A stretch of DNA of 64,000 bases, taken from Octopus sinensis. Lineage: Eukaryota. The notes beneath the pieces were generated by a model that saw nothing but the letters and a program-made list of their open reading frames with translations, was not told where the DNA came from and searched no databases. Shown one piece after another: positions 4,969 to 62,290 of this stretch. The stretch spans positions 9,300,001 to 9,364,000 of the forward strand of contig NC_043023.1 in NCBI RefSeq assembly GCF_006345805.1, given 5' to 3'. The position numbers and the translations under genes are program-made. The first letter of the stretch is position 1. Every line of letters begins with the position of its first letter.

Positions 4969-5040
4969 AGATCTATCCAATAATGCAATCGTGAAAATTG
5001 AAAATGGATCGTTTGCAAATCTTCCGAGATTATGGCGTTT
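4969..5040 (+). CDS. LRR exon E1: DLSNNAIVKIENGSFANLPRLWR(L)
   Basis: tctttcag|AGATCTATCC...TATGGCGTTT|gtaagt; 72 nt; phase 2-2. Confidence 0.92.
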
Positions 5041-5358
5041 GTAAGTTGAACAGTCTTGTTTATACTATATTCCTGAGTATATATTTCGTCAAATTTAATA
5101 TCTTTCCATCTTTCTTTCTTAACCTTCGTTTGCCCTTCTCTAACTCACATTATATATATCTCTCTCTATATATATGTATGTGAGTGTGTGAGTTGAGCGT
5201 GTTTGTGTGTGACGATGTGCGTTTACATTAGTCTATGCGTTCTACATCACTGTTTGGTATATTGTGAAAAGTGCGTATATAGTCATATGTATATTTATGC
5301 CTGAAACGTGTGGATAGATATATGGACCGTCAATGTTTCGTCTTGGGCAGGAGATACT

Positions 5359-6742
5359 AAACAATTCTGTGATGATATCACGTTGTAATTTTAACTCGAT
5401 AAATGAGCAAAAGCTACATTTATCAAAGGAAAAACGACAGAAACATCACGCAGAATGTCATAAAGGAATTAGAACCAGCGGAGAGATACATGTACTTATC
5501 GGTATTTGAAGTGGACATGATCAAATATTCAGTGATGAGGGAAAGGATCAGAATAGAATATTATATCAGGTTAAAAGCAATATTCAAGACAGAGCTGAAT
5601 GCAAGAAACAGAATCGAGGAGATCGGTACTTTTGCTATACCAGGCGTGACTTACAGTTTCAATATCATTAACTGGTCAATTATTGAAATATCTAATCTTG
5701 ACAGAAAAATACGAAAATTGTTGACCATGCGTAGAATGCACCACCCTAAACCAGATGTAGAACGATTTTACCTGCCAAGAAAAGAGGGTGGCCGTAATAT
5801 TTACAATTGGAATTAACAATTGAATTAACGATTGACCGAAACACCTACCAAAATAACTCTCATGACTGGATGTTAAAACTTATCTCAAAGCACGGAAACA
5901 AGAAGGTGTCATATAAAGTAACAAAAGATGCAAGGGAATATCTAAGTGAATTCCAAATACAACAAATCCCAGAGTTAGACGTACTAGAAACAAGCACAGA
6001 AAAAGCTAAGCGAATGAAAGTACATGCAAAGAATCTGACTTAGATATTCTTACAGATAAATGACAAAGAAAACAGCTCAATGGCAAATACCCAAAGAGAG
6101 CTAACGGTGCCGATGTGGATAAAGCCATTACCCATCAATGGTTAGTGTTTTCTAGCTTAAAATCAGAAACAGACGGATTTAATATAGCAGCTCAAGATCA
6201 AGGCCTACCTACAAGAAACTACCATATTAAAGAACGGCAGTCACCCAGCATGTCTTGTATGTAAACAACAAAATGAAACCATTGATCATGTTGTCTCCAT
6301 GTGCAGTCTTCTTGTGCATACAGAATATCTCAACAGGCATGATTGAGCAGCACATCATATTCACTGGTTAATTTGCAAAAACATAGACGTGCCACATGAT
6401 ACAATCTGTTGGGGACACGAACACACTCCAGTTCTTGAAGATGATCGCATTTTATCCTCTAGAACTTCGCCATTAAAAGTGACAGAAAGATAGATGCGAA
6501 TAGACCAGGCATTATATAGAAAAACTACAGGTAAAAACCATGCCTCGTCATTTAAAACTGTCCCAGTCGACAAAAATAGTATCTGTCAAAACCTACAAAA
6601 CTGAGCAAGTGTAAAGATCTTGAAATAGAAATTAGCAAAATGTGGAAGAAAAACAATGCCTGTTGTCATAGTTTCCCGAGGAATTATAGCAAAAGGCCTG
6701 AATCATAACTATCTCAGATACTAGGAAACATCAAAATGGCAG
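5359..6742 (+). mobile_element. Decayed 5'-truncated R4/Dong-like non-LTR retrotransposon (RT C-terminus, zinc-knuckle region, RLE endonuclease remnant)
   Basis: Frameshifted peptides KQFCDDITL..LDK.AKATFIKG, ELEPAERYMYL, ELNARNRIEEIGTFAIPGVTYSF, MHHPKPDVERFYLPRKEGGR and KDLEIEISKMW match R4-clade ORF motifs (from recall). Confidence 0.85.
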
Positions 6743-7813
6743 CAAAATGGCAGTTTGATCTTCCTGATATTATTAATCTTATTGTATGTTTCTACATATA
6801 TTGTCTTCCCTTCTATCTTCGCTCTCCCTTACATCCTCTCTAACAGACGTTCACATTTCCTCTGTGTGTGTGTGTGTGTGTGTGTGTGTGTGCGTGCGTG
6901 TGCGCGCGTGTATGAAAATGATTAAAGATATGAGTGTTTGTGGTTTACATTTGTTATGTGATTTATATAAATTAATGTGAACAACGTAACAATTAACGAT
7001 TAAAGACACAATGCCACAATATGGGGAAAAGCCATGTAGGACGACCAAGGGGATCCAGAGATTCAGATCTAACAATATTCGACAATTAGGCATCAGTAAT
7101 AAGAAGTAGAATACACATCCAGGTGAATTCCTCCTGTATGATAAGTAAATAGAAATATCCTATGGCAGAATTGGGAAAAATTCAGACATTTTGACAACAA
7201 ACGATAAATAGAGAGACAGTTGCGTTTATTATATTTCACATTATAAAGCCTACAATTGTTTATATTTTAATAACATTGATAAAATCTTCAGTATACAGAT
7301 GTAGTGGGAGCAACACTTAAGGTTGGTAACATAGATGCAAACACAAAGTTACAATGCTTATATACACATACATATATCTATACATGAATAAAAAATATGA
7401 CGAATCTGAATTGTAAACTGAATTTCGTTGCATTCAATAACATTTTTGTAATTGCAGACAGAGAGGCAGATTTACAGATGCAGACTCACACACACACACA
7501 CACACACACACACACACACACACACACACACACACACACACACGCACGCACACTCACAAACACGAACACTCTCACATACACAACCACAACACAATTTATA
7601 GTCATTCACATGCTCACATACATATACATCTAAATATACGTGTGTTACAAACATATATATATATATATATTATATATACACACGCAAATATACATACACA
7701 TGTTCACAGACATATAGACAAACATAAATATATATATAGACGTATATATGTACACACACACACACACACAAACATATATATATATATATATAAAACGATT
7801 TTACAACTGCACG

Positions 7814-8440
7814 TTCCCACGGCTTTATCGATCGCATTCTTACCTAGAATCGATTTTTGTAATTTTTTCAAGATTTATGCACGCCCTCATAGTGTCGGTA
7901 TCTTCATATCTATTTTGAGTGCAATCGGATGGAGGATGCCCAAGATCCTAGAAGACACACACACACACACATACAGATAGAACGGATTTTATATAATAGA
8001 CTAAAAAAATTTTTTTGGGGTTTGTTCATTCATAATAAATGGAAATAATAAGTTCGACTGTAGGGTAACTACTTCAAGGAGGGACACCGGATTACGTCCA
8101 AGACGGATGCTTCACCTCAGACTGTAAAGGGAGGTAACTAAATTGATTTTGGCAAATTTGTTTGTCACTCAACAGTAGTTGAAAAAGAAAATAGAAAATT
8201 GATGGACTGTGTATGAAATATGCATGCTTGGTGTTAAGGGAAGCAACTCCTATCAGCGCCATATTGTCGATTGTGCAACCAAAGAAAAGCGATTTCCCAC
8301 GGCTTTATCGATCGCATTCTCACCTGGAATCGATTCTTGTACTGTTTTCAAGACTTATACACGCCCTGATACCGTCGGTATCTACATATCAAAATTGAGT
8401 GCATGTGGATGGAGGATGTCGGAGATCTGAGAAGACACAC
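7814..8440 (+). repeat. Two ~147-bp direct repeats (7814-7960 and 8294-8440), probably fragments of one small dispersed element; copied into each S unit
   Basis: Both read ttcccacggctttatcgatcgcattct...ggatggaggatg..agatc..agaagacacac. Confidence 0.75.
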
Positions 8441-60065: not shown

Positions 60066-60299
60066 GTAAGTTGAATATGTTTTGCTGATACTCTTCACTT
60101 GATATATTTCTAAATATTTAATGCTTTCCTATGTTTTTACTTCTTGAACTTGCCCTTCTCTAACTCAGATTTTCTCCACTTATGAATTTGCAAATGTGAA
60201 AGTGTTTACGAATATGAAAATTTGTTGTTTACATCAGTGATTTGTATTATGTGTGTGTATGTGTGTGTGTGTGTTTGTGTGTGTATATATTTCTCAATG

Positions 60300-61880
60300 T
60301 GGTCATCTGGAGAGCATACGTTCTCAGACGTTTGAACTACCTCTCCCAACTATACCAACATAAATATTAAAATAACGGCGAAACTCGAAGCAATCCAACG
60401 AAGCTACACAAACGAAATTGCATCAAGGAAACATACTGGCTACTGGGAAAGACTGAAAGAGTTATAGCGTTTTGTGAAATGCATCCGCACTCTCTGAGAT
60501 ATGCAGTACAAATTATGTCGTAGCAGATAACAGATAAGTTTTGGCCGCTATTTTGACCCTGTTGTGTCCACTGCTCTGATTGGTTGGCATTGGCACAGTT
60601 TGTCTGTTGACTTATTTCGCGCCAATATGTGAACCAACCAATCAGAACCTTCCAATAAGATCATGTGGCTCTGTCTTTTGGGTTTTCTTCTTGAGCCTCT
60701 AGTATGTTATAAAATCCCAGTGATCCAGTGAATCTGGGTCTTTGGTCTCTGACCATTGACCACACCAGAGAAGCCAGTTTCATCAACGACCAGACCAGCT
60801 AGTTCCAGCGACCCAGCCATGTTCCCGCTCCAGACAGCGACGACGCCAACATACACCAGCAATGCAGGACGTCTCCACCACCGTCGCCTTCGTCTCAACG
60901 TCACCGTTATCTACCGTCGCCATCACCACCGTCGACTTCAACGGTACGTACACAGCAACTCGCTTGAGTTTAGCTCACACGCTGTTTGTGTAATCACACC
61001 AAGGTTAACAGCACAGCACGACCGGCAAGACCTTCTGTACCGATGTAACCTGGCAAATGGATCGACGCCCAACTTCTACACGCATACCAACTGCTCTCCT
61101 CTTTGCCTCAACTTCCTTGACACAGAGCGAACTGCTATTGTGTACCTGTACGAACTGGTATTTATTCTCCATCTTGTGTCTGGACATTCTTTCTTTGCTT
61201 TGTATTGTTGTTTCACTCTTTTAACTTACAACGGACACACAGACACATGTGCACACACTCAGACACTACACTCTGCTAGCACTCACACACGCTCTTATCA
61301 CTATGTACACATCCTGTAAATAAAGTCTTTCTTTCTCTCAAGCAGTAGAACGGTTGTGTTTTTCTCCTTATTCTTTACTGGCACTCATATTCTTTTATAC
61401 CACATATCTGGTTTTCTTATTTTCTTAGGGACGACCGAGCGTTGTTTCAAAGGAGACATTTCTGTCACCAACTCCTTTACGTACGGTCGTTCACTACAGA
61501 GTGAAAACTCTTCTCTGTAGAATGAATGTGAGAAAGATACGCAGTGATATAAACCTGGAAATTCCTGGAAGGCCGTGTACCAAACTTAGGCATTGAAAAT
61601 TACACAAACAGCAGAACAAGGCGCAGCTGCATAATGACAAAGCTCCCAGCATATCAATGAAAATACGGGAACAGATACTTCAATAGTTTTGATTTCAAGA
61701 GCCACAGCTCTACAATATCCTGCCAACATTCCCGAGAGAAGGTACGGCCTGAATGTAGGCGTCCTTTAAACAAAACTGGTCCATCTCCATTGAAGGGTTC
61801 TAGATGAGCCTATCTCACTGCAGGAAACACAGATGACGGCGGCGGTATCGAAGACCCTCTTTCACCAAATATCACATATC
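60300..61880 (+). mobile_element. Decayed CR1/L2-like LINE 3' fragment, interrupted by a ~1.07-kb insertion (about 60465-61527)
   Basis: LWRAYVLRRLNYLSQL, LEAIQRSYT, YWERLKEL ... RERYAVI*TWKFLEGRVPNLGIENYTNSRT resemble the CR1-group RT C-terminus (from recall). Confidence 0.65.
60705..61404 (+). mobile_element. Probable solo LTR (700 bp)
   Basis: Starts TGTTATAAAA and ends TTTTATACCACA (TG..CA, short inverted ends); AATAAA at 61319-61324; higher GC than surroundings; no matching TSD seen. Confidence 0.5.
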
Positions 61881-62218
61881 AGAAGATATGAAAATTGAAT
61901 TATTCCTTGTAATGACGCATCTTCGTTCCTTCGCCCATGAGCTGTAACTCTTCGCCTAGCGCAACAGATAATAAAGGCAACCCTCGTACTTACGGTTGAA
62001 GAGACAGACAAGGCCTAATTTCGTAGCCAGCACGTAAGTGACAGAGCCACTGTAGGTGATTAATTGATCGACGCTTATCATGATATCCGTCATCGAATTC
62101 TAAAACTTTGACTTCTTTTTCTTATCTTCCTAATTGTCATTCCTTAGACATTATAGTAAAAAATGTTGCAACTGGTCTCTTCTATATTATTTCTTATGAG
62201 TTCTCTTTTATCTTACAG

Positions 62219-62290
62219 GAATCTAGGGAATAACAAAATCTCGACTATTGAGCAAGGAACATTCAGGAATCTTTCCAACATAAAGTATTT
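62219..62290 (+). CDS. LRR exon E11: NLGNNKISTIEQGTFRNLSNIKY(L)
   Basis: ttttatcttacag|GAATCTAGGG...AAAGTATTT|gtaagt; 72 nt; phase 2-2. Confidence 0.92.

Follow-up and report, generated by a model that had tools for sequence, protein, structure and literature searches.

In arthropod Dscam1, exons for Ig half-domains undergo mutually exclusive splicing guided by docking/selector RNA pairing, while the cassettes of VLR loci carry no splice sites, and a somatic process copies them into a gene that is incomplete. We know of no somatic receptor diversification in the octopus, an animal with a large nervous system. As for leucine-rich repeats (LRRs), exons of the 72-nt, phase-2 kind that encode one repeat each are already published, for Slit, the gonadotropin receptors, NLRP3 and the brown-alga ROCO proteins. 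The one-LRR exons of Slit are short and repetitive, and this modularity was proposed to permit splicing to varying numbers of LRRs (Little et al. 2002, as cited in PMC6642158). LHCGR, FSHR, TSHR and LGR4-6 are described as having one-LRR exons of similar size, with all introns in phase 2 (Koo 1991; Kobe & Deisenhofer 1994, both as cited in PMC11378527). Human NLRP3 and other NLRs have strictly modular in-frame LRR exons, and skipping one of them (exon 5) removes an interaction surface (PMC6642158). The LRR-ROCO genes of the brown algae Ectocarpus and Saccharina combine 72-bp phase-2 one-LRR exons with intense duplication and positively selected concave positions; splice variants have been observed there, and a somatic-recombination hypothesis was proposed that is still unconfirmed (PMC11378527). 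The idea that one-LRR exons are alternatively spliced is thus not new, having been put forward for Slit, NLRP3 and brown-alga ROCO (PMC6642158, PMC11378527). Octopuses also have a "group 3" expansion of adhesion GPCRs, made of octopus-restricted tandem gene clusters with positive selection, in which 5 of 22 members have LRRs and one a Death domain, and whose members are expressed in axial nerve cord, suckers and skin (PMC6408891).

The locus described here lies in a 64-kb stretch of Octopus sinensis DNA (the window), which holds 11 LRR exons of one repeat each on its + strand, from 4969 to 62290. The scan of both strands asked for an AG and a GT 66..78 nt apart, a frame open in phase 2 between them and xLxxNxIxxI at the beginning, and on the - strand it gave no credible LRR exon. 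The length is exactly 72 nt in 11 of 11 cases, and all exons are phase 2-2, hence symmetric: they begin with A or G, the third base of a Leu codon, and end with TT, its first two bases. Every junction consequently reads TT-A or TT-G, which is the Leu at position 4 of LxxLxLxxN. The donor GTAAGTTG is identical in all 11 exons, the acceptor is always AG, and the nine type-A exons have the 29 nt upstream of the acceptor in common. The splice sites are uniformly strong, with GTAAGT donors and pyrimidine-rich acceptors, and the window contains no weak sites of the cassette type. The 11 exons encode eight distinct peptides (17037 equals 24398, and 40460, 44766 and 49065 are the same), the copies being recent duplicates rather than independent events. 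When concatenated, the exons match Pfam LRR_8 with E=1.2e-71 and show the 24-residue repeat LxxLxLxxNxIxxIxxxxFxxL.

Much of this had been seen in an initial annotation made from the letters of the DNA. Its limits for the array coincide exactly with the start of the first exon and the end of the last, all 11 exons bear out its placing of the intron within the Leu codon, and its residue lists for the exposed strand are correct (WR, ER, TG, TF, EY and KY at x2x3; D, F, A, Y and N at x5; SN, SR, QN and GN at x7x8). It was also right that symmetric exons with common splice signals leave any ordered subset in frame, with the Leu restored. The same annotation held that the intron splits each beta-strand, and a structural model agrees. 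In the AlphaFold (AF2) prediction for the closest protein, P0001 of Octopus vulgaris, where pLDDT exceeds 90 across the LRRs, DSSP assigns strands to residues 46-48, 70-72, 94-96, 118-120, 142-144 and 166-168. These are x3-L4-x5, one per 24 residues and centred on the split codon, so that in the model the strand straddles the junction.

Table. LRR exons and tandem units of the array, in coordinates of the 64-kb window.
Feature	Position	Strand	Remarks
LRR exon 1, type A, (L)DLSNNAIVKIENGSFANLPRLWR(L)	4969..5040	+	72 nt, phase 2-2; near-identical to first LRR exon of O. vulgaris L001 (15682)
LRR exon 2, type A, FLSNNAIVKIENGSFANLPKLER	9702..9773	+	exon scan
LRR exon 3, type A, DLSRNAIVKIENGSFANLTSLTG	17037..17108	+	inside 7.36-kb unit
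LRR exon 4, type A, peptide and nucleotides as exon 3	24398..24469	+	7.36-kb units 97.6% identical
LRR exon 5, type A, ALSNNAIVKIENGSFANLLSLTF	31861..31932	+	exon scan and unit alignment
LRR exon 6, type A, YLSNNAIVKIENGSFANLPSLEY	36161..36232	+	exon scan and unit alignment
LRR exon 7, type A, DLSNNAIVKIENGSFANLLSLTF	40460..40531	+	exon scan
LRR exon 8, type A, peptide as exon 7	44766..44837	+	exon scan
LRR exon 9, type A, peptide as exon 7	49065..49136	+	exon scan
LRR exon 10, type B, NLQNNKISTMEQGTFRNLSGLEY	59994..60065	+	type-B units 82% identical over ~600 nt
LRR exon 11, type B, NLGNNKISTIEQGTFRNLSNIKY	62219..62290	+	exon scan
Five 4.30-kb tandem units	30817..52723	+	99.2-99.7% pairwise identity
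Two 7.36-kb tandem units, one LRR exon each	14339..29118	+	97.6% identical
Tail of another 7.36-kb-type unit	1..2869	+	98.5% identical to 19392-22261

The array is built of tandem segmental duplications of exon plus intron, in units of 4.3, 4.7 and 7.4 kb that are 92-99.7% identical and stand head-to-tail, all in one orientation. Each 4.30-kb unit consists of one LRR exon and an intron in which two copies of a retroelement fragment are spaced by 1408 nt. Since the window opens with the tail of a further unit, the array presumably runs on upstream. It grew by repeated germline tandem duplication of such units, probably driven by unequal crossing-over between the repeated introns. The duplications differ in age: the split of type A from type B and that within the type-B pair (82%) are old, whereas the five 4.3-kb units, at 99.5%, are very recent. 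The introns in general are packed with retroelement debris.

To which gene do these exons belong? The O. vulgaris locus of P0001 (L001) is 92-94% identical to the units of the window, and there an LRRNT exon is followed by nine 72-nt phase-2 LRR exons and then by a phase-2 LRRCT exon at 109343; inside this last exon lies the start Met (109392) annotated for a gene of 899 aa with GPS and 7tm_2. The LRRNT has a weak Pfam match, below the cut-off (E=3e-4), and its cysteine pattern agrees. All 21 LRR exons found in L001 (9), L002 (1) and L004 (11) are 72 nt long and in phase 2, and the intron position is therefore independently backed by the paralogous loci. Among the proteins, the LRRs of P0122 continue into an LRRCT, and P0121 joins an LRRCT to a Ly6-like module. 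HMMER gave 35 relatives; 8 of the 10 long ones scanned have LRR_8 with GPS and/or 7tm_2, five have all three together (P0139, P0143, P0144, P0138 and P0152), and one of these five also has a Death domain. Three Logan contigs of ~4 kb each encode P0143 (1155 aa; LRR_8, GPS, 7tm_2). The window itself contains no LRRNT, LRRCT, GPS or 7TM sequence, and for this reason the assignment to adhesion GPCRs rests on homology to L001; the LRRNT and LRRCT caps probably lie beyond the window. The two loci are not colinear, the two type-B exons of the window being without counterpart in L001. The relatives fit the group 3 expansion.

Judged from sequence, the window is likely to lie inside a single large octopus gene, rich in introns, that codes for the LRR solenoid of a member of an octopus-specific LRR adhesion-GPCR family, with functional exons and a default product in which all of them follow in order. 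The window exons and the adhesion GPCR downstream would most likely form a single gene, whose ectodomain probably runs LRRNT, LRRs, LRRCT, a Ly6/uPAR-like module and GAIN/GPS before the 7TM. The whole family has this design in common, each 24-residue LRR occupying a separate 72-nt phase-2 exon and the intron interrupting the fourth Leu codon, and constitutive inclusion of the exons would yield a long solenoid.

The distribution of changes along the exon is consistent with function. The selection statistics come from few, non-independent exon copies, and in these the 16 scaffold codons show no amino-acid change (pN=0, pS=0.069), as against pN=0.356 and pS=0.241 at x2, x3, x5, x7 and x8. In an alignment of 880 columns, the most diverse stretch is the last 24 nt of the exon. 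Within the five 99.5%-identical units, 8 of 72 exon positions are variable versus 36 of 4205 outside (Fisher p=4.7e-7), which makes the exon the most variable 72 nt. This excess owes mostly to exon 36161, which differs from its sister exons at 6-7 nt, every difference changing an amino acid, in nearly identical flanks; a micro gene-conversion tract from a donor beyond the window could be its origin. The scaffold codons thus appear to be under purifying selection, and the concave-face codons beside the junction (x23, x24, x2 and x3 on one side, x5 and x8 on the other) to have diversified; with frames and splice signals intact in every copy, the exons would be functional. The diversity demonstrated here comes mainly from germline change, in the number of copies and in concave-face residues.

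Could the array instead be a decaying, untranscribed by-product of segmental duplication, that is, a row of pseudo-exons? The retroelement debris that fills the introns, a frameshifted exon copy in a paralogue (L004 11131) and a search of a 5.8-billion-protein collection, in which no annotated or transcript-derived protein carries these exons, would agree with it. However, frame, length and both splice signals are intact in 11 of 11 exons, and the scaffold codons are unchanged in amino acid despite synonymous and intronic divergence, so that decay is very improbable. The assembly deserves some suspicion too: the five 4.3-kb units may in part be mis-counted copies, or haplotypes placed in tandem, of a real gene with fewer exons. 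Long tandem repeats are hard to assemble, the identity of the units is very high and three exons encode one peptide, but 36 intronic sites and the lengths of microsatellites vary among the units, one unit has a clearly different exon, and paralogous and orthologous loci in two other assemblies hold 9-11 such exons. We regard an artefact as improbable. A repertoire by DNA-level recombination, suggested in the initial annotation, would turn the units into donor cassettes that somatic assembly or gene conversion draws on, as with the VLR genes of lampreys, with clonally different receptors as the outcome. What speaks for it is a general resemblance, many LRR modules with variable concave-face residues at one locus. 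Every unit, though, has a canonical AG acceptor and GTAAGT donor instead of lacking splice signals beside an incomplete germline gene, the units share one orientation with ordinary exon spacing, and in L001 the LRRNT and LRRCT exons are in phase with the LRR exons, as in an ordinary gene; in the brown-alga analogue, no somatic recombinants were found (PMC11378527). The suggestion is scarcely credible, DNA-level reshuffling being evident solely as germline tandem duplication.

Another question is how the exons are used. Does the cell skip them, stochastically or under regulation, or choose among them in a mutually exclusive way, to obtain many isoforms with hybrid strands, as in a Dscam- or protocadherin-like code or an immune-type repertoire? 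Ordered subsets of these symmetric exons with identical splice sites were computed to give 768 distinct proteins and 26 junction-strand types, versus 9 in the consecutive isoform, and the variable residues flank the junction. In O. sinensis, one paralogue gene has 13 RefSeq isoforms (409/385/361/337 aa) and a second at least 7 (525/501/477 aa). What sets these isoforms apart is entire LRR units of 24 residues, with the joins at the split Leu, and the exon pair c and c' never occurs together in them; the O. vulgaris pipeline model P0001 leaves out 4 of the 9 L001 LRR exons, and Slit, NLRP3 and brown-alga ROCO offer precedents. These RefSeq isoforms, however, are pipeline models that short-read mis-mapping could produce. 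Eight of the 13 are clean whole-exon combinations, but five are mid-exon chimeras with a frameshifted exon copy, and exon ends of the same class differ by 1-3 nt in 36, which is the pattern expected of short-read mis-alignment; read mis-assignment is for these reasons a real possibility. Among Logan transcript-derived proteins, none supports the paralogue isoforms. The longest 25 of 632 inverted-repeat pairs in the window come for the most part from (TA)n microsatellites pairing with themselves and otherwise from one intronic hairpin element that is repeated, with no docking/selector complementarity among them, in a set of recent duplicates that gives no power for conserved intronic elements. 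The diversity on offer is also small, with 8 distinct exons and most residues identical. Combinatorial use is thus possible but unlikely. The initial annotation had conceded that actual alternative splicing is not visible in the DNA, and the splice sites of the window are uniformly strong and identical; the in-frame logic of its combinatorial proposal stands and the paralogue isoforms lend it some weight, but the window gives no sign of splicing choice. In the constitutive gene that we prefer, any exon could be dropped in frame, and this may be used somewhat, as the paralogue models suggest. It is doubtful that octopus-specific LRR adhesion GPCRs make cell-specific sets of ectodomain isoforms, differing in repeat number and hybrid junction strands, from rapidly expanding arrays of interchangeable 72-nt exons; if they did, a third independent route to receptor-surface diversity would stand beside arthropod Dscam splicing and clustered protocadherins.

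The well-supported part alone offers a clean example of how an LRR ectodomain grows and diversifies: exon plus intron are copied in tandem, the scaffold stays constant, and change falls on the ligand-facing residues either side of the junction. There is a practical side as well, as in current octopus annotations each such receptor gene ends up in two pieces, an "LRR protein" and an adhesion GPCR without its head. Should the exons really be used in varying subsets, as the paralogue RefSeq models hint, cephalopods would possess a family of receptors whose surface diversity is generated by splicing.

How, then, does the locus stand among known systems? Like the VLR loci of lamprey and hagfish, it clusters LRR modules with variable concave residues, but all of its modules are canonical exons. 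With arthropod Dscam1 it has in common that tandem duplicated exons encode the variable binding surfaces of a surface receptor; in contrast to Dscam1, a solenoid structurally tolerates several exons together, and the longest 25 of the 632 inverted repeats hold no docking/selector pairing. The LRR exons of NLRP3 and other NLRs are likewise modular and in frame, yet they encode RI-class LRRs of cytosolic sensors, have other exon sizes and are not tandem near-identical copies. Slit (mouse, human SLIT1-3) also carries individual LRRs on short repetitive exons, but its product is secreted, as a ligand in which four LRR domains are capped, and the gene shows no recent tandem amplification of exon plus intron. 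The group 3 expansion (Ritschard et al. 2019, PMC6408891) matches the relatives of the window in LRR, GPS, adhesion 7TM and, in one member, Death domain; that paper treats whole genes, not one-LRR exon arrays, recent amplification or LRR-exon isoforms, and the window itself shows the LRR part alone. The glycoprotein-hormone and LGR receptors are, like the proposed gene, GPCRs whose LRR ectodomain comes from one-LRR phase-2 exons, but their 7TM is of the rhodopsin class, as opposed to the GPS and 7tm_2 (adhesion class) of the window's relatives, and their repeat number is fixed and conserved, with exons that are not near-identical copies. The brown-alga ROCO proteins are cytosolic ROC-COR GTPases of a distant eukaryote, and each of their exons contains the whole LxxLxLxxNxL with the intron elsewhere, whereas in the octopus the intron cuts the L4 codon inside the strand.

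The window is AT-rich, with a G+C content of about 35%, and it is crowded with microsatellites and retroelement debris, which marks it as eukaryotic. A scan of both strands for stretches of 66-78 nt bounded by AG and GT, with no stop in phase 2 and an LRR-like start, returned 11 exons on the + strand, and by the same scan the - strand holds no credible LRR exon. All 11 are exactly 72 nt long, carry the donor GTAAGTTG, begin with A or G and end with TT, so that every junction rebuilds a Leu codon, TTA or TTG, at position four of LxxLxLxxN. The initial annotation had described this Leu codon as cut by every intron and had listed the residues at x2-x3, x5 and x7-x8; the cut is confirmed, and all of the residues listed are correct against the exon sequences. 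Because the introns split the motif, a search of the six-frame translations for an intact LxxLxLxxN gave nothing useful. The 29 nt upstream of the acceptor are common to the nine type-A exons. Once concatenated, the exons encode LRRs in a perfect array with a period of 24 residues (Pfam LRR_8, E=1e-71), with eight distinct peptides among the 11. Within the window, no LRRNT, LRRCT or further LRR exon was found outside 4969-62290, and Rfam and tRNA scans gave no matches.

The position of the introns relative to the beta-strands was addressed with a structure model of P0001, the closest relative from O. vulgaris, which has the same repeat type and a pLDDT above 90 over the repeats. DSSP places the predicted strands at residues 46-48, 70-72, 94-96, 118-120, 142-144 and 166-168, that is, at x3-Leu4-x5, with the intron-split codon in the middle. 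In this model the strands straddle the junction: one exon supplies x2-x3 and the following exon supplies the residues from x5 on, and the earlier suggestion that each strand is divided between two exons is borne out.

LRR exons, duplicated units and associated repeats in the window
Feature	Positions	Strand	Identity	Source
LRR exon starts, type A	4969, 9702, 17037, 24398, 31861, 36161, 40460, 44766, 49065	+		exon scan
LRR exon starts, type B	59994, 62219	+		exon scan
Two 7.36-kb units			97.6%	self-comparison
Five 4.30-kb units	30817-52723		99.2-99.7%	self-comparison
One 4.7-kb unit				self-comparison
Retroelement ORF fragments	5403-6043, 10133-10384, 17470-18113, 24831-25474, 32226-32935, 33703-34167, and equivalent sites in each later unit
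Divergent retroelement ORF copy	57036-57878
150-nt-arm inverted repeats	21735-21884 / 22190-22339, 14829-14978, 29175-29318
(TA)n tracts	29033-29186, 56641-56792, 59219-59638

How was this array built? Self-comparison of the window reveals segmental duplicates arranged head-to-tail in three size classes, which are about 92% identical to one another, and each unit carries one exon together with intron sequence containing fragments of non-LTR retroelement ORFs. The 1408-nt internal duplication of the 4.3-kb units holds no second exon copy. The type-B exons, 82% identical over about 600 nt, are an older pair, and the introns of types A and B are only faintly similar. The array probably extends beyond the upstream edge of the window, since its first 2.9 kb belong to the end of another unit. 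The array was thus built by stepwise germline tandem duplication, and unequal crossing-over between the repeated introns would be the obvious mechanism of its growth. The initial annotation had also proposed recombination at the DNA level as a source of diversity; germline duplication is the only form in evidence, and the somatic form is without support. A somatic assembly like that of the VLRs finds no support, as the modules are all canonical exons, in one orientation and in phase with the cap exons.

Some of the repeats in these introns deserve a comment. Every type-A exon is followed, 360-1100 nt downstream, by retroelement ORF fragments (motif ...MHHPKPDVERFYLPRKEGGR...) that were copied along with it; they have no Pfam match, and the copy at 57036-57878 is more divergent. 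Inverted repeats with 150-nt arms, 81-86% complementary and in one case spaced by 305 nt, recur in each 7.36-kb unit and may represent a MITE-like element.

The exons themselves are under selection. The nine type-A exons were aligned together with their flanks, 400 nt to either side. Exon nt 17-55 are invariant but for one synonymous site, and the last 24 exon nt form the most diverse stretch of the alignment (pi 0.22 vs a flank mean of 0.048). By Nei-Gojobori counting, pN is 0 and pS 0.069 at the 16 scaffold codons, and the concave-face codons x2, x3, x5, x7 and x8 give pN=0.356 and pS=0.241. When the five units of 99.5% identity are compared, no other 72-nt segment varies as much as the exon, with 8 of 72 sites variable vs 36 of 4205 outside it (Fisher p=4.7e-7). 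Most of this excess is supplied by exon 36161, where six or seven changes, all of them amino-acid changing, sit between stretches of 120 nt that are almost unchanged. Such a pattern fits diversifying selection; it also fits a short gene-conversion tract, for which neither the window nor the related O. vulgaris locus L001 contains a donor, so that the source would be a copy outside both. Under either reading, the exons behave as coding sequence in which the ligand-facing residues are being varied.

The identity of the gene emerges from its relatives. P0001 is the best protein match (69% identity in the best local alignment, covering 49% of the query), and the others are generic LRR proteins at 41% identity or less. 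The DNA of L001, the locus of P0001, is 92-94% identical to the window units, and the window is colinear neither with it nor with the O. sinensis locus L002; the window is consequently a paralogue, or the same locus in a closely related octopus species. L001 contains an LRRNT exon and nine 72-nt phase-2 LRR exons. A further phase-2 exon from 109343, located after an (AAT)n tract, reads DLRNNADMMCGCQLPAMSNYIKS...C...C, an LRRCT-like cap. The next annotated gene encodes 899 aa with GPS and 7tm_2 domains, and its start Met, at 109392, lies inside this LRRCT exon, which indicates that the annotation has cut one gene in two. The cut falls within L001 10001-117623 (OX597842.1). P0001 itself is a 190-aa model, "IGFBP acid labile subunit"; it uses five of the nine LRR exons, and its last exon (107552-107620) is dubious. 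A long (AAT)n microsatellite is present at 63215-63489 of the window, with no LRRCT exon after it within the window, and a much longer one, at L001 108024-109300, is directly upstream of the LRRCT exon.

Other relatives bear this architecture out. In P0122 the LRRs continue into an LRRCT cap, and in P0121 the cap is followed by a Ly6/uPAR-like cysteine module; both labels in P0121 come from cysteine patterns, and Pfam matches neither LRRCT nor UPAR_LY6 there. P0121, P0129, P0133 and their relatives have a conserved module in common, rich in cysteine and located after the LRRCT and before the GPS region (...NYSLFQRNLQCQTCSG...C...CCxGxLCNKNDF). It resembles a three-finger domain of the Ly6/uPAR type, and Pfam has no match for it. 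With P0121 as the query, a full HMMER scan returned 35 representatives, and those with a named source are all from Octopus (O. sinensis, O. vulgaris, O. bimaculoides). Eight of the ten long members scanned combine LRR_8 with at least one of GPS and 7tm_2, and all three domains occur in five; one member also has a C-terminal Death domain. The latter, at residues 1203-1277 of P0139 (O. bimaculoides), comes after the 7TM region, which is unusual among adhesion GPCRs, and agrees with the single Death-domain member in Ritschard et al. 2019. P0143, a protein of 1155 aa with LRR_8, GPS and 7tm_2, is encoded in each of three Logan contigs about 4 kb long. The window's relatives match the octopus-specific "group 3" adhesion-GPCR expansion of Ritschard et al. 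2019, in which 5 of 22 members have LRRs and one has a Death domain, and which forms tandem clusters, is under positive selection and is expressed in the axial nerve cord, suckers and skin (PMC6408891). The LRR exons found in L001, L002 and L004, a second O. sinensis paralogous locus, are all 72 nt and phase 2, so that this exon design is a family trait and not a quirk of the recent copies.

Does splicing exploit this design? By computation, ordered subsets of the window's exons would yield 768 different proteins and 26 types of junction strand, the consecutive isoform having nine. As the initial annotation remarked, the window sequence gives no evidence of actual alternative splicing: its splice sites are uniformly strong and identical, and no transcript-derived protein with these exons occurs in the protein collection searched. 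An inverted-repeat search for Dscam-type selector elements gave 632 pairs, of which the 25 longest are for the most part microsatellites paired with one another, together with one repeated intronic hairpin element. Very long (TA)n tracts dominate these 25 pairs; they reach 420 nt and complement one another over tens of kb of intron.

The paralogues are more informative. In RefSeq, the O. sinensis gene on VCDQ01004985.1 has 13 isoforms (409, 385, 361, 337 aa), another gene has at least seven (525, 501, 477 aa) and a third has several. When the 13 were mapped onto the L004 exons, in genomic order a, b, c', c, d, e, f, g, h, i, j, eight proved to be clean whole-exon combinations: abcdefgh, bcdefgh, bc'defgh, bdefgh, adefgh, c'defgh, defgh and adfgh. 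Exons c and c' never occur together in the 13, and i and j are unused. This is precisely the pattern that the earlier idea of exon skipping predicts. The other five (X2, X4, X7, X8 and X13) are mid-exon chimeras. They combine the first half of the exon copy at 11131-11203, in which an A-run at the 3' end shifts the frame, with the second half of b or d, the joins using GT and AG dinucleotides inside the exons; they reflect cryptic splicing or else mis-mapped reads. Such models could stem from short-read junctions mis-assigned among near-identical exons: the chimeras involve a frameshifted copy, exons of one class differ at their 3' ends by no more than 1-3 nt in 36, and no de novo assembled transcript backs any RefSeq isoform. 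The P0001 model also leaves out four LRR exons, but its terminal exon is dubious. Exon skipping in the octopus LRR adhesion-GPCR family is therefore plausible, with the clean L004 isoforms in its favor and the chimeras and the silence of the window on the other side, and the initial interpretation as a whole is partly supported. Possible splice-generated diversity in this family is a modest but real lead.

This gene also has company. Slit has one LRR per short in-phase exon, from which alternative splicing was inferred to be possible (Little et al. 2002, as cited in PMC6642158). The Bradysia "slit-like" P0003 is almost intronless. Gonadotropin receptors are cited as having one-LRR exons with all introns in phase 2 (PMC11378527), human NLRs have modular LRR exons, with skipping of NLRP3 exon 5 demonstrated (PMC6642158), and brown-alga ROCO genes have LRR exons of 72 bp in phase 2, a concave side under positive selection and splice variants, and somatic recombination is an unconfirmed hypothesis for them (PMC11378527). 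One-LRR in-phase exons, and the inference that alternative splicing is thereby possible, are already established, and the window is a further case of a known gene architecture; we found no paper on octopus LRR exon arrays, their isoforms or their splicing. Two features are distinctive in the window: its introns cut into the strand, where those of the brown-alga genes lie outside the LxxLxLxxN core, and the amplification is extremely recent, in a receptor family confined to octopuses.
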